A DNA stretch of 64,000 nt, taken from NCBI GenBank assembly GCA_964188305.1, contig OZ076889.1; one strand, 5' to 3'. Positions within the stretch are counted from its first letter, which is position 1. Every line of letters begins with the position of its first letter. Under the pieces are notes generated by a model. That model saw only the letters and a list, made by a program, of their open reading frames with translations, did not search any database and was not told the origin of the DNA. A program made the position numbers and the translations under genes. Shown here in pieces: positions 300 through 36,822 of this stretch. This DNA is from Podarcis bocagei (taxonomy: Eukaryota).

Positions 300-2811
300 A
301 TACAGAGAGATGTTGTGTCTAATTTTATTAATTTAGTCTGCTCTAAGTCATACAATTATGAAAAACAAACAACAAAACGACTGCTGGAAGCCCAGGAATA
401 TTTACAGTCTCGCCTTGTTGTAGTGAGGTCAGTCTATATTGTTGCACAGATTGGTTATGTTTGGTACCACAAAAAAACTGGACAGATTTAACAATTTTTA
501 TATACAGAAAATAAAAAGGAAATAGTTCAAGTATCAAAATACAAAGACAGCTTAAATAACATTTTTATTACAAATCAGTCCCACTGCCATACATCACAAT
601 TAGCAAAGGAGTGTCTACATTGTAAACCAAACTGCCTGCTACCAAGAATCGACCTGCCCTCTTCAGGTGCAAGCATAGCGGAAATTCCTGCTGCTTGACA
701 TTCATACTGATCATGCAAAAGGAGACAATGTAGGAGTGAGGTATCACCCAACTCATTTTAGTTTCACAAGTGTAGAAGTTATTTTAAAAAGTGAGGTACC
801 CTCAGATATCTGGTCTGCAAGAGCAGCACAACTCTTAAACTGCTCTAGAATTTCTTTTATTGGGGGGGGGCAGAATTGTTATGTACCTCAGAAATCAAAT
901 AAGATTTTCATCTCAAGCTAAGAAAGTCAAAAAGGTCAGATCCTATGAGCCAACAATGGCATGTACAAAATAAAAAGATTGCAAGAGTTTGATTTTAATA
1001 ACGTGATTTCCCATTCAAGAGCTAAGGAGCAGTTCCTTCAGCCACCTTAACATTTATAGTGTTTTCTCCTGGACACAAAAGATAAAAAGAAGTCTACAGA
1101 AGACATACATCTTTTTGAAAAGGGAAACATTTGGAGCACTGGGGGGGGGGGCATTGATGCTGCTGCTTCAGCATAGGTTGGTGCTAGAACAGCAACAGCA
1201 TTTTCATTGAAGATCTCAAAACGCATTCAGTGCCAGGAATATAGGGCACTTTTCTCAGTGTGCTGCAAAATCCCACAGAGAGGCAAGAGTCTCAAATATT
1301 GTACTAGTATTCAGACTGCTTGGAGCCCAGGAATAACTAAAATTCATAGGAAAAGTTCAGACCAGAATGGCTTTGATTACCTTCTTATAAAGAATGCCTA
1401 AGCAGGAGATACTGTCATAGATATTGCTATGTCCATGTAAACTCTGAGAAAGGAAGCACCTGATCACTGGAAGAAGCAAGTTGGAAGCTTTCGCTCATTT
1501 TGTCACCATGTTCTAAGGCTATCCTCTCTATAGCAAAACAGTTCAGTGTGCATTCTTTCACAACAGTTATAAGTACCTCAGTATTTATAACCATCACCAG
1601 CATACCGTTCACATATGAATATAAAGGAATGTTAATATTTCCAAAATTCATCCACCAATTATTTCCAAAGCCAGGCCTTTGGGATGATGATTTGGTTTTT
1701 TCTCGATACCTTTTCATCTGGAATAAGACTAAATTACATTTTAAAGATACAGATGTCGAAACAAGCCATTAACAAAATAGCAGGGTACCACAAGCTAACA
1801 CAGACTTATTTGCACTTCCTCAGATAGGCTATAGAAAGATGTATATGTCACAGCCATAGCCAAAACCAGTGTTCAAGACTGTGATACTCAATGTGAAGCA
1901 TACAGTCATTCTTGGGTGGAGTAGAACAAGAAACAACTGTTTCAGCATAATGCCCAAAATCTCTCCACATCTTTTTCATATTGTGAAACTGATATACTAA
2001 GTATACTTAAATTATGAACTAGTATAAAAAGTGCTAATCAGTGAATTAACTACTTAAAAATCCCAAACCATCAGGGCACAACCACATTTTCAAAAATATG
2101 GTACAGGAATTAGATGCATGGAGCTACAGTCCAGTTATTCAATGTATACATAAATGTGTGACAAAATTGTACTTAACCAGAAAAGAAATACTGCAATAAT
2201 AAGAGTTATTTGCAGTAAAAGCACACTTGTACCAGGCATCAGTTCAGCAATGGTCATGAAGGGTTAAATATTGATATTTTTTATTAAAAACGCCCTGTTT
2301 CCCATCTGTTTCACTGCAGCTGTGAAGGGTGTACAGTACCTTCACAGTTGCCAGTACCTTCAAAGTTTAATATTGCAGTGACTTCAGAATCTTTGTCTAC
2401 TACTTAGCAACCTCAAGTGTATAATGCTTAATATTCTAGCATCCACTCAGCCTATGCTGTAAGACAGGTACATTCACATTTTCTTTTAACAGTTAAGATT
2501 CTCCACTTTCATCAACACAACATGTTATGCTGAAATTGTGGATTTCACAATATTGCTGCATGTACACCACTGTTTTAAATCAGAGCATCAGTCTCTTAAC
2601 CTCAGATGTTTCATTCTCTTGCTAAAAACACATACTGCTTTTTGTCAGCTTGTAGCTGGAATCTCTTTTCACTCAACTCTGGAAGTCCTTAATGAGCAGC
2701 CAAGGACATATCCCAGAGCCGGGTGCTGATCTTCATACATCACGGTTTCTCTGCTTCTTAGTGCTCTGCCCCTTTACTACATTTCCATGGAAGAACGCGG
2801 ATGTCTGCTGT
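300..2811 (-). other. ANKS1A: ANKS1A 3' UTR (end uncertain, ~545 or ~305)
   Basis: AU-rich sequence downstream of the stop, with no repeats I could recognise. Minus-strand AATAAA at 2280-2285, 856-861, 564-569 and 324-329. Confidence 0.6.
564..569 (-). terminator. Candidate polyadenylation signal AATAAA
   Basis: Plus-strand tttatt. On the minus strand it is followed ~15-35 nt later by the GU/U-rich element ctgtctttgtattttg. Confidence 0.5.
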
Positions 2812-2815
2812 TCAG
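2812..2815 (-). CDS. ANKS1A: ANKS1A terminal exon, coding part: AA|C TGA completing ...STN*
   Basis: Acceptor cattctgtttgccttctgccaag at 2816-2817 followed by C TGA. Gives the ...LSTN C-terminus I recall for canonical human ANKS1A. Confidence 0.8.
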
Positions 2816-3165
2816 CTTGGCAGAAGGCAAACAGAATGGGGACAATATTAATGGAAAGAAATATAGGGAACGAGCTATTCATTCATGTAAAACTACTGAG
2901 GGAAGCCTTCAGTTACAGTGATGGAGAAGTTAATGGCCACAGCTTTGTGTGTTTTATAATATGGTGGATGCCCTCTGTTCATAACCAACTGCTCTGATGC
3001 TTCTTGGATAGTTTACCATTAAAAGGCACATGTACTATGTTATCTGGTTTTCAGGAGAGAGAAAAATCACCAATAACTCCTGCAATTTACTGACAGAGAT
3101 TAAAACTATTCATATTAGGGAAATAACTGTTTGCTTTTTGAGAATAAAAGCAAAGCACAGATATA

Positions 3166-3171
3166 TTTATT
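3166..3171 (-). terminator. Candidate intronic polyadenylation signal for the KYETTIF isoform
   Basis: AATAAA on the minus strand inside the last intron, followed by ctgtgctttgcttttatt. Confidence 0.35.
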
Positions 3172-4592
3172 AACACTCAAATGTGCAGTAGTCTTCAACT
3201 GCTATAATTGTACCTCGTTACAATTTGGTATAATTACCTGGACATAATTCCAGGGACAGTGGGCAGATATCTGGCCCTACCTTCACCTATCATCAACAAC
3301 TGTCTCACTGCTGACCCTATTCTCTGAACAGAGAGAGATAAAAAATTGCTTGAGACCTTTGTCTAATATAGTGACTTCTCTACTCTAACAATATCAGAAA
3401 TAATCTCTGTAGGCCTTAACCTTATTATCAAAAGCTGGTCCTAATCCAACATTTCTTTGCAATCATTGTTTAATGAGCTACGTAAATTTGCCATTTGAAG
3501 AATGTAATAAGGCAAATACAACAGACTGCTCACCTGCTTGAAGAAAAATAAATGGCAAATATTTTGATAGTGTCAGTGTGCCTGGAATGCTACATTTAGC
3601 AATTTTTAAAGAGATGCTATTTGCATGAAATTTTGACCCCTTTTCTTCTAAAGGGGAACTGTGTTCTGTTACAGCAAAAGCACACCCTTGATTGTCAGTC
3701 TTTGTGTACAATTTAGTGACATGTGCCTTTGAAAGTTTCAATTTTAAAAAGAGTTTAGGGGGGGAATCAATTCAAAATTATTATTTATAAGCAGATTGGT
3801 TAACCTGAACAGAGAGTGATAATTCCAGGTAACGATTTTAAAAAAAGGCATCATGTTTAATGAACAGCTGAAAACATCCCTTTTTGGCATTTTCTTAAAT
3901 ATACCAAGCCTAACTCCTAGGAAAAAGGAAAAGCGGTTAATTAGAGCAGACGCACTGCCAAGTAGAACTTTATATTATACCATGCATTCAGATATCCAAG
4001 GACAGCAAAGATTGTGAGCAGCATCCATGCTAGGAAATCTGGTGAGCAAGAGGTTTGCAAGCAGTATCACAGTGGTTAGTGTCTTCTGAGACGATAAGTA
4101 GAAGAGTGCTACTTGTTGGAAACAGTTTTGTGGCCATGACTCAGTATGGAGGTATAAATCTAAATTGAGACAGCATGTACATATGAGACCAAAGTTGTAG
4201 AACAGTCCAAGGTTTAGAATGATAAATAGAAAAGGCCTATGGAGTGTTACTTCACCCCACAAATTCACAGTGTCAAAATGAAGAGAAAGTCAAGAAACAC
4301 TGGGTGTTTTCTGAAATCCACATATTTGACTCCTACAGGCTTCATTTCTCCCACCTCACAGACATCTGAAACAGGTAGCTCTCTCAGTGAGTTACACTTG
4401 TTTCCATTAGGAGTATTCACAGCGTTCAGAAGAGATCAGATAAAAAATGCTGTTTAGTCTATGGTATCCTAGTGCTGTTGCCTCTGATGGTGCCACACCT
4501 AGTGTCAGCAATGGAAGGAAGGAGGGATTTAGAACAGCAGACAGATCAGACTGCAAAGGCACGGTTAGACTGGATGGATGCAGGATTTGTTT

Positions 4593-4712
4593 TCAGAAGA
4601 TAGTAGTCTCATACTTAGTGCTGAGGGTCCTCTTGGAATCCTGCTTGGGCTCTACAACCCAGGACACACTAGCATGGGACTGGGAGTCTTGGTCCACTTC
4701 AGATGGCTCGAG
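4593..4712 (-). CDS. ANKS1A: ANKS1A penultimate/alternative last exon: [32 protein letters not shown] then KYETTIF* (read-through to TGA 4595-4593), or spliced at 4615 (AA|gtatga)
   Basis: gttttctag acceptor at 4713-4714. Internal donor gives a 98-nt exon 4615..4712. Read-through AAG TAT GAG ACT ACT ATC TTC TGA. Confidence 0.93.
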
Positions 4713-5418
4713 CTAGAAAACATTAGAAGGAGAGAGCATATCAGCCAAGCTGCTCATTTTGAAAATGTGAAGGCAAACCTGGATACATTTTTAAAAGCTC
4801 TGTACAAATACAGCTTTGGGAGGCAACTGCCTAGGTCAGATTTTTTAAAAAGTATTTAAAGCAGAGGATGTGCACATGTACAGGTATTTACCACTTAAAA
4901 TGTTACCATAAAGACTTGGACCACTTTTTCAGATTAAAGAAATAGATACAGCTCATTTTGGAAAAAGAACAAATTAAATTTTGTTTAAGCCCAAATCAAT
5001 TCTCAATTCAAGGTAGCAGTTTGTTGAAATTCACTAGAAACAGAATGCTTAGTTGGAGTTTAAAGTGTTATATTCAACTATCTAAGGTTAGGTTTTTATG
5101 ATCTGATATATTCTCTTAGACAACAGAACTCTTCTCCTTGAATGTTAAATTGATTTTAATACGGCAAAACTCGGCAAATGTTGCACTGAAGAAACATTTT
5201 ATGCTGGTGAGAAGTGTTACAAGCTTGTCCTTGAAACGCCTCTTGTGTAATGTATAGGAAAGCTTGAATGAATTAACCTAGCAAGGTCAAGACAGAAGGG
5301 AACATAGACAGAGCAGCAAAACTAAGGGGAAAGAATGAGGGAATCACTGAATGTGAGTTGGTTTGATAACAGAAAACGTTTGTAACGAGAGACATGTGAC
5401 TGCAAGAATGGTAAAGAC

Positions 5419-5517
5419 CTTAGCTCCTTGACTAACAGATTGCAGCGGCAGATAGGAGGGACGGTGTGTAGTACAGGTGTGACAGTAACAACAGCGACTA
5501 TCGGGAGGGAGCGGCAC
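5419..5517 (-). CDS. ANKS1A: Probable alternative cassette exon of ANKS1A (VPLPPDSRCCYCHTCTTHRPSYLPLQSVSQGAK); 99 nt, phase 0/0
   Basis: ctcccgttcctcag acceptor, weak AAG|gtcttt donor. Frame-preserving and CpG-retaining in an AT-rich intron. Resembles an insert I recall from some vertebrate ANKS1A isoforms. Confidence 0.7.
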
Positions 5518-12876: not shown

Positions 12877-13025
12877 CTGCAGGGAAAGAGAATGTCAGAA
12901 AAGCATGCTACAAAAAAACTTTCTACATTGTGGCTTCTCAGTATCAACACAGCGCTGCAATCTTTCACCTTGTGAATCACCAGAATTTTCATCTTAACTG
13001 GAACTGAATAGGGTTAGCAACTTAC

Positions 13026-36618: not shown

Positions 36619-36725
36619 CAGGAAGCGAACATCATCAAAGCCATTGAGAAGCAGTTTGCTCTCATACTGCTGTAAGCCGATGGACTCCAGCCACTCCCCA
36701 ACACTCTGCTCCAGCATCCGTGAAC
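36619..36725 (-). CDS. ANKS1A: ANKS1A coding exon, SAM1 first half (G|[35 protein letters not shown]); 107 nt
   Basis: ttcctctctcgtcag acceptor, CTG|gtaagt donor. Lies within ORF 36544..36930. [25 protein letters not shown] is ANKS1A-type rather than ANKS1B-type. Confidence 0.96.
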
Positions 36726-36822
36726 CTGACGAGAGAGGAATCGGCAGACGCTTGAAAAAGGAAAACCCATTAAGGCGGTAGCAGCGGCACTCTGAGGAAG
36801 ACAGGTGGCATTGCCACATCAT
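36619..36822 (-). CDS. ANKS1A: Predicted alternative first coding exon of a short ANKS1A isoform: 5'-extended SAM1 exon starting [33 protein letters not shown]
   Basis: Open frame continuous with SAM1. ATG ATG at 36822-36817, with further in-frame ATGs at 36828 and 36834. Strong similarity to the recalled AIDA-1/ANKS1B short-isoform N-terminus. Confidence 0.72.

Follow-up and report, generated by a model that had tools for sequence, protein, structure and literature searches.

Choice at the last 5' splice site of ANKS1A in Podarcis bocagei probably sets an ancestral KYETTIF tail or a single asparagine as the C-terminus

We analyzed a stretch of 64,000 nucleotides from the lizard Podarcis bocagei (the whole of which we call the window) and propose that the 5' splice site at position 4614 of its minus strand decides between two C-termini of the ANKS1A protein. 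When this donor is left unused, the protein would end in KYETTIF, which with its stop would be the C-terminus that the ANKS1 family inherited from its ancestor and that ANKS1B still has, and the front of the last intron would become a conserved 3'UTR with a miR-124 seed match. When the donor, which is rather weak, is used, a 1.8-kb intron would be removed and the protein would end in …LSTN, without the class I motif (T-I-F-COOH). Since the choice of donor sets both the tail and the sequence that follows it, PDZ ligand and 3'UTR content would be toggled together. We assign a probability of roughly 0.7 to this reading of the last intron, that is, to an alternative KYETTIF/N C-terminus decided at the 4614 donor, with an ancestral tail and a UTR-like intron front.

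The window carries, on its minus strand, the 3' half of squamate ANKS1A (Odin), and all features given below lie on that strand. Coding exons were placed by tblastn with the coelacanth ANKS1A protein (P0006) and with Podarcis and lizard models, followed by splice-aware mapping. In the direction of transcription these are a coding exon ending at 36619, exons at 15890-15792, 13175-13026, 12876-12769 and 12198-12034, exons at 10638-10513, 9800-9729, 9326-9240, 8758-8621 and 6738-6568, a cassette exon of 99 nt (5517-5419, …PLPPDSRCCYCHTCTTHRPSYLPLQSVSQGAK) placed by the same two steps, and the last coding exon that the two C-terminal forms share (4712-4615), which encodes …LEPSEV…KRTLST and closes with the letters AA. 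The cassette exon is 97% identical to that of a skink and 90% identical to that of a rattlesnake, with annotated isoforms that include it and others that lack it, and the last common exon shows 96 and 93% identity in the same two comparisons. The model assembled from the window exons has 98% identity to RefSeq ANKS1A X1 of Elgaria multicarinata and 55% to a short form of ANKS1B. Its exons form the series SAM1-SAM2-PTB and the sequence is of the ANKS1A type, not the ANKS1B type, as befits an ANKS1A ortholog. In the rattlesnake locus aligned with the window (L012), a convergent TCP11 (Pfam Tcp11) lies just downstream on the opposite strand; the window stops short of it.

The 5' splice site in question reads TAA/GTATGA (4617-4608), its GT (4614-4613) falling within the Lys and Tyr codons. 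An earlier interpretation made from the letters alone (the sequence-only reading) had described a donor AA/gtatga at 4614 that overlaps codons, and it is indeed present there on the minus strand. Read through, the codons K-Y-E-T-T-I-F and their stop occupy 4616-4593, with K at 4616-4614, F at 4598-4596 and TGA at 4595-4593. This end, E-T-T-I-F followed at once by TGA, has the features of a class I PDZ motif, namely Thr or Ser at position -2, a hydrophobic residue at position 0 and an immediate stop. The other path leads to the terminal exon, whose polypyrimidine tract and AG acceptor (…tttgccttctgccaag) span 2840-2816. The acceptor ttgccttctgccaag, a good one, ends at 2816. Next come C (2815) and TGA (2814-2812); the terminal exon adds no more than these four letters (2815-2812) to the coding sequence, the C completing AAC (Asn). 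Splicing of 4615 to 2815 removes the 1.8-kb intron between donor and acceptor and yields a protein ending in …LSTN, with one residue in place of the tail. The sequence agrees here with the earlier proposal that the terminal exon contributes only C and TGA, and every coordinate of that reading proved correct, including that of an AATAAA at 3171-3166. The donor at 4614 matches CAG/GTAAGT at 5 of 9 positions, the other donors of the gene ranging from 5 to 8. Donor weakness was considered as a diagnostic and dropped, as three further ANKS1A donors of the window also score 5/9.

Junction DNA was collected from ANKS1A of a bird (L001), non-primate mammals (L002/L003, L004 and L008), fish (L005 and L006, with the mRNA contig L009), a skink (Lerista, L011) and a rattlesnake (Crotalus, L012), together with two ANKS1B loci (L007 and L013). 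In 10 ANKS1A sequences, from fish to mammals, the tail codons read AAG TAY GAG ACY ACY ATH TTC, followed by TGA or TAA. Apart from one exception, variation was confined to the third letters of the codons for Tyr, Thr, Thr and Ile and to the letters of the stop; the exception, the single non-synonymous change, was TTC to TAC in one mammal, a conservative replacement of F by Y. The KYETTIF codons, which vary almost only synonymously, are under purifying selection. The sequence-only reading had made its proposal depend on conservation of the YETTIF codons, which these 10 sequences bear out. The acceptor is conserved as well: over 22-30 nt, the lizard block that carries C and TGA is 90-95% identical to that of two mammals, and CCAAGCTGA was also found in the skink and the rattlesnake. 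On this comparison both the TIF and the STN outcome are selectively maintained from teleosts to mammals. In one teleost lineage the stop after TIF has been lost and the open reading frames continue as KYETTIFW… (P0019, P0021 and P0022). STN is the end of related teleost ANKS1A transcripts whose tail exon is nearly identical, suggesting that the tail can be lost where the spliced form has come to prevail.

Full-length reference proteins were found by an exhaustive protein search with the 39-residue tail. Among the best 120 ANKS1A-type matches, 110 end exactly in KYETTIF and 10 use the splice instead (five of them ending exactly in STN), a list skewed to TIF by a query that itself ends in TIF, which still shows intact codons in the genomes listed. 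The TIF-ending proteins of these best 120 come from birds, turtles, crocodilians, seven squamates (Pogona, Sceloporus, Podarcis, Anolis, Varanus, Rhineura and Heteronotia), gorilla, gelada, wombat and coelacanth. Prediction pipelines already list a KYETTIF-ending ANKS1A isoform in more than 100 species. Models ending in STN were found in Anolis carolinensis, Pogona, birds, mammals and a frog, and several teleost proteins derived from transcripts, P0154 and P0158 among them, have this end too. For part of their support, Gnomon and Ensembl TIF models may draw on homologous proteins and not on transcripts.

Two fish mRNA contigs document the two ends directly. In one (L010) the junction reads ACC AA/C TGA, which is the spliced form; the other (L009; 2215 nt, with an open reading frame of 616 residues) is fully spliced and has KYETTIF as its end, beyond which lies a UTR with GTGCCTT. 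As one ends in TIF and the other in STN, both mature forms exist in teleost ANKS1A, and the dual-end arrangement is older than the split between ray-finned fish and tetrapods. Judged from their protein tails, all eight members of a primate protein cluster that derive from Logan assemblies (presumably assembled from RNA) have the STN end, and certain lineages may thus use read-through only rarely. In the lizard itself both forms are probably produced. The small runs X1-X14 were tried as a source of RNA and set aside: across positions 2400-5200 they hold about 95% of the content of DNA runs, introns too, and they may be DNA.

These distributions could also be read as lineage defaults with little switching inside any one organism, KYETTIF being the end of fish and sauropsids and STN that of mammals, and the other form a minor by-product in each. 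The dominance of TIF models in sauropsid and fish annotations and the eight of eight STN ends among the primate assembly-derived proteins fit such a division. The counts are biased, however, by the TIF-ending query and by the reading of clusters, and the division is crossed from both sides, with STN models in Anolis, Pogona and birds, STN transcripts in fish, and intact TIF codons in mammals. As both outcomes are also conserved within one and the same genome, we consider lineage defaults rather unlikely, and prefer a choice at the 4614 donor.

The read-through form would run from the TIF stop directly into a block (4592-3994) that resembles a 3'UTR in its alignment to skink and rattlesnake. 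All of these 600 nt were alignable, with 79-88% identity to the two species. Ordinary introns of the gene were mostly 1-13% alignable to skink and rattlesnake, and coding exons were 85-97% identical; the introns that aligned beyond 1-13% were one of 149 nt and, in the skink, also the intron directly upstream of the tail exon. The 3'UTR of the terminal exon is 68-84% identical to skink and rattlesnake, so that the block at the intron front is at least as conserved. Conservation weakens at about 3990-3700, and the remainder of the last intron could not be aligned to skink or rattlesnake. The bird sequence aligns as far as 4385, which is all of the 210 nt that its contig offers. A conserved intron front of this kind could alternatively be a splicing-regulatory region and not a UTR.

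Within this block, 31 nt past the TIF stop, lies the heptamer GTGCCTT (4562-4556), a 7mer-m8 match to the seed of miR-124-3p. Positions 2-8 of miR-124-3p are complementary to GTGCCTT, as checked against an antisense probe sequence (PMC7177327). The heptamer lies 28-33 nt past the stop in the bird, the skink, the snake and three mammals, 55-96 nt past it in three fish (the spliced mRNA included) and 33-38 nt past it in both ANKS1B loci; none of the ANKS1A and ANKS1B sequences that we examined lacked the seed match of this predicted site. By chance, a 100-nt window would contain any one heptamer in about 0.6% of cases. Over the whole 64 kb GTGCCTT occurs 9 times against 11 expected, without enrichment, so the signal lies in its conserved position. 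MicroRNA sites act only in mature mRNA, and conservation of this one therefore suggests that read-through yields a functional mRNA. On the strength of the seed match, TIF mRNA may be under the control of miR-124, and if the site works it would be lowered in neurons. ANKS1B is neuronal and carries an equal site, so the site neither supports nor excludes a synaptic role for ANKS1A. We found no paper on ANKS1A or ANKS1B as a target of miR-124.

Conserved intron fronts are common beside regulated or weak splice sites, and the donor at 4614 might simply be constitutive in this lizard, the TIF codons and the block behind them being kept for non-coding reasons (splice enhancers or silencers, or U1 binding) and the read-through RNA being unspliced precursor. 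The uniform STN ends of the assembly-derived proteins in the primate cluster would also follow from this. We hold it to be very improbable, because variation in the seven codons is restricted to synonymous positions and the stop remains a stop despite changes of its letters, and because TIF closes the protein of a fish mRNA that is fully spliced. Moreover, the paralog ANKS1B uses the identical heptapeptide as a real C-terminus, and the block extends over at least 600 nt and has a microRNA seed match in common with the 3'UTR of ANKS1B.

The read-through mRNA would most likely keep the whole intron and end at the distal poly(A) signal (569-564), which serves the terminal-exon 3'UTR (2811-540, the latter end being approximate); a non-canonical site within the intron would be an alternative 3' end. 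The distal AATAAA and its flanks are conserved between lizard, skink, snake and a mammal. The sequence-only reading had instead given the retained intron an AATAAA of its own. This hexamer does exist at 3171-3166, and its role as a conserved poly(A) signal is doubtful: one AATAAA was observed against 1.12 expected in an intron of 1777 nt with 62% A+T (P = 0.66), and it falls in the part of the intron that could not be aligned with skink or snake. Neither AATAAA nor ATTAAA is present in this intron in the rattlesnake and two mammals (whose introns are about 1.09 kb long), and we found no canonical poly(A) signal where the conserved block fades out (about 3990-3700).

The competing view, that of a composite terminal exon, has the read-through mRNA cleaved about 20 nt past 3171-3166, with splicing and cleavage in competition. 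It can point to the hexamer itself with a T/GT-rich stretch downstream, and to the skink intron, which also holds AATAAA and ATTAAA, at places that are not homologous. A composite terminal exon would call for a conserved functional poly(A) signal within the intron, and what we found was a hexamer at chance number, in unaligned sequence, with no AATAAA or ATTAAA in the rattlesnake and the two mammals; we judge this view improbable, and the read-through mRNA probably does not end at the AATAAA of 3171. With that AATAAA at chance level and the distal one conserved, plain intron retention with use of the distal site is the most economical account of the TIF-ending mRNA.

An alternative first coding exon (36822-36619), with its ATG at 36822, starts with MMWQCHLS and runs into SAM1. 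From this ATG to KYETTIF the frame is open, with no internal stops, over 512 residues with the cassette exon and 479 without it, and the resulting model is 97-98% identical to predicted isoforms of Elgaria and Hemicordylus. An MMWQCHLS start joined to a KYETTIF end is likewise predicted in Elgaria, Hemicordylus, Heteronotia, Euleptes and the snake Pituophis, as well as in Terrapene, Pelecanus, Athene, Sorex, Puma, Elephantulus, Chrysochloris and several teleosts. This is the layout of an AIDA-1d-type short isoform, which has no ankyrin repeats. Both ends may meet in one product, as had been suggested: the frame is open in the window, and the identical combination stands in predicted isoforms of other species.

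Taken further, the arrangement might amount to a dual-use intron kept since the ancestor of teleosts and mammals. Retained, the intron would give an Odin anchored to PDZ domains and an mRNA with the miR-124 site; spliced out, it would leave a protein that is unanchored and an mRNA that escapes the site, so that cell types would set localization and dose, and with the MMWQ start the read-through form would be an AIDA-1d-like paralog at PDZ scaffolds. We put this forward as tentative, and as a whole it is more doubtful than the donor choice itself.

ANKS1A (Odin) has been studied as an adaptor in Eph and EGF receptor signaling, and we know of no PDZ link described for it. The ANKS1A sequences and isoforms discussed here are not new, having been catalogued by prediction pipelines; because they already stand in databases, the gain lies in interpretation and not in a new gene product. 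The interpretation as an on/off switch of a PDZ ligand coupled to a conserved 3'UTR was found in no paper. A search for papers on a PDZ ligand or on C-terminal isoforms of ANKS1A returned none, and in a 2023 review of the ANKS1 family the word "isoform" is absent and the sole mention of PDZ concerns another protein. A vertebrate-wide alternative tail that equals the PDZ ligand of AIDA-1 leads to the hypothesis that PDZ scaffolds tether one class of ANKS1A isoforms and leave the other free. The switch would also explain why conservation is exon-like at the start of an "intron". Work on ANKS1A that is blind to isoforms (antibodies, knock-outs, and expression constructs based on the STN form) may overlook half of what the gene produces.

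The closest known system is the paralog ANKS1B. Human ANKS1B ends in KYETTIF, and its C-terminal peptide binds the Shank1 PDZ domain with a Kd of 4.8 uM (PMC8244488). AIDA-1 uses its C-terminus to bind the PDZ domains of PSD-95 (PMC4565644, citing Jordan 2007). The premise of the sequence-only reading, that AIDA-1d ends in KYETTIF and binds PSD-95 PDZ domains, stands on these two sources. All ANKS1B-type matches end in TIF. The tails of the two paralogs agree in their seven residues and stop far beyond chance: the final seven residues, the position of the stop and the exon phase are identical, the codons in both are AAG TAY GAG ACN ACN ATH TTY, and GTGCCTT follows about 30-40 nt after the stop in both. 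They also have in common a SAM-SAM-PTB body and a short start of the MMWQCHLS type. PDZ binding has been measured for ANKS1B, whereas ANKS1A-TIF is known here from sequence; with last seven residues identical to those of ANKS1B, it would be expected to bind PDZ domains.

The paralogs differ in that the ANKS1B tail appears to be constitutive and the ANKS1A tail is removable by splicing. Within 2.4 kb past the ANKS1B stop (one locus, L013) we found neither a homolog of the ANKS1A acceptor nor an AG/C plus stop with a pyrimidine tract. The claim that ANKS1A keeps the same switch as its paralog was accordingly mistaken, there being no equivalent switch in the 2.4 kb of ANKS1B examined. On this view the ancestral tail persists in both paralogs, and so far as we saw only ANKS1A is able to remove it.

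The predicted ANKS1A proteins of RefSeq and Ensembl (among them Elgaria multicarinata X1, Hemicordylus capensis X12, Pogona vitticeps X5/X3 and Anolis carolinensis X1/X3) are automatic models in which either end, TIF or STN, occurs both with the cassette exon and without it; no experiment or paper tied to these predicted isoforms was found. PDZ ligands under the control of splicing are familiar from other proteins, an example being the alpha1 isoform of SynGAP as against its other C-terminal isoforms. SynGAP-alpha1 binds PSD-95 PDZ domains (PMC5040590). SynGAP and ANKS1A are alike in that alternative 3' processing sets whether a class I PDZ-binding end is present. Unlike in SynGAP, the form of ANKS1A that bears the motif is the unspliced one, with the codons of the motif at the start of an intron; the Lys codon of ANKS1A spans the donor, and the alternative end adds a single residue.

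A cassette exon of 99 nt was located on the minus strand of the window (5419-5517), where it encodes a Cys/His-rich peptide (…PPDSRCCYCHTCTTHRPSYLPLQSVSQGAK) and has a weak donor, AAG|GTCTTT. It shares 97% identity with the skink sequence and 90% with that of the rattlesnake, and occurs from coelacanth and gar through mammals, with both included and skipped forms present among the annotated isoforms. To our knowledge, no function has been assigned to this exon. Further upstream in the gene, between exons 13175-13026 and 12876-12769 of the minus strand, lies an intron of 149 nt (12877-13025). The skink and snake sequences aligned over its whole length at 63-67% identity, unlike the other ANKS1A introns, which could not be aligned in full to these two species.

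Read data were compared over 2400-5200 of the window, introns included, using fourteen small runs (X1-X14; 65-145 million letters) that were taken to be RNA by guess. Five studies contributed these runs, which represent three related species. The words found in these runs were nearly as many as in whole-genome runs. The runs represent either enriched DNA of some kind or RNA rich in unspliced ANKS1A. Later analyses covered the window from position 500 upward, which leaves out 424-473, a stretch that falls within the distal 3′UTR end or immediately past it.

Variants of the read-through tail were seen in other lineages. In one teleost lineage the KYETTIF stop has been lost, and the open reading frame continues as KYETTIFW… (fish genomic ORFs P0019, P0021, and P0022). 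Related teleost transcripts and models (P0158 and P0161) carry a tail exon near-identical to that of this lineage and end in …STN. One duplicate appears to be losing its PDZ-ligand end. Two rare variants were also noted: one mammal (L008) has KYETTIY, and an ANKS1A-like protein of a catfish (P0190) has KYETQIY.

Just 3′ of the KYETTIF stop we identified a conserved miR-124-3p seed match, GTGCCTT (window 4556-4562, minus strand). This motif was present 28-96 nt past the stop in all of the ANKS1A and ANKS1B sequences examined (L001-L013), from fish to mammals. A literature search found no paper describing ANKS1A or ANKS1B as a miR-124 target. In the ANKS1B sequence L013, three clustered poly(A) signals (AATAAA, AATAAA, and ATTAAA) were observed 123-143 nt past the stop. 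The cluster, at approximately 125-140 nt after the stop, suggests an ANKS1B isoform with a very short 3′UTR, within which the GTGCCTT site would still be contained.
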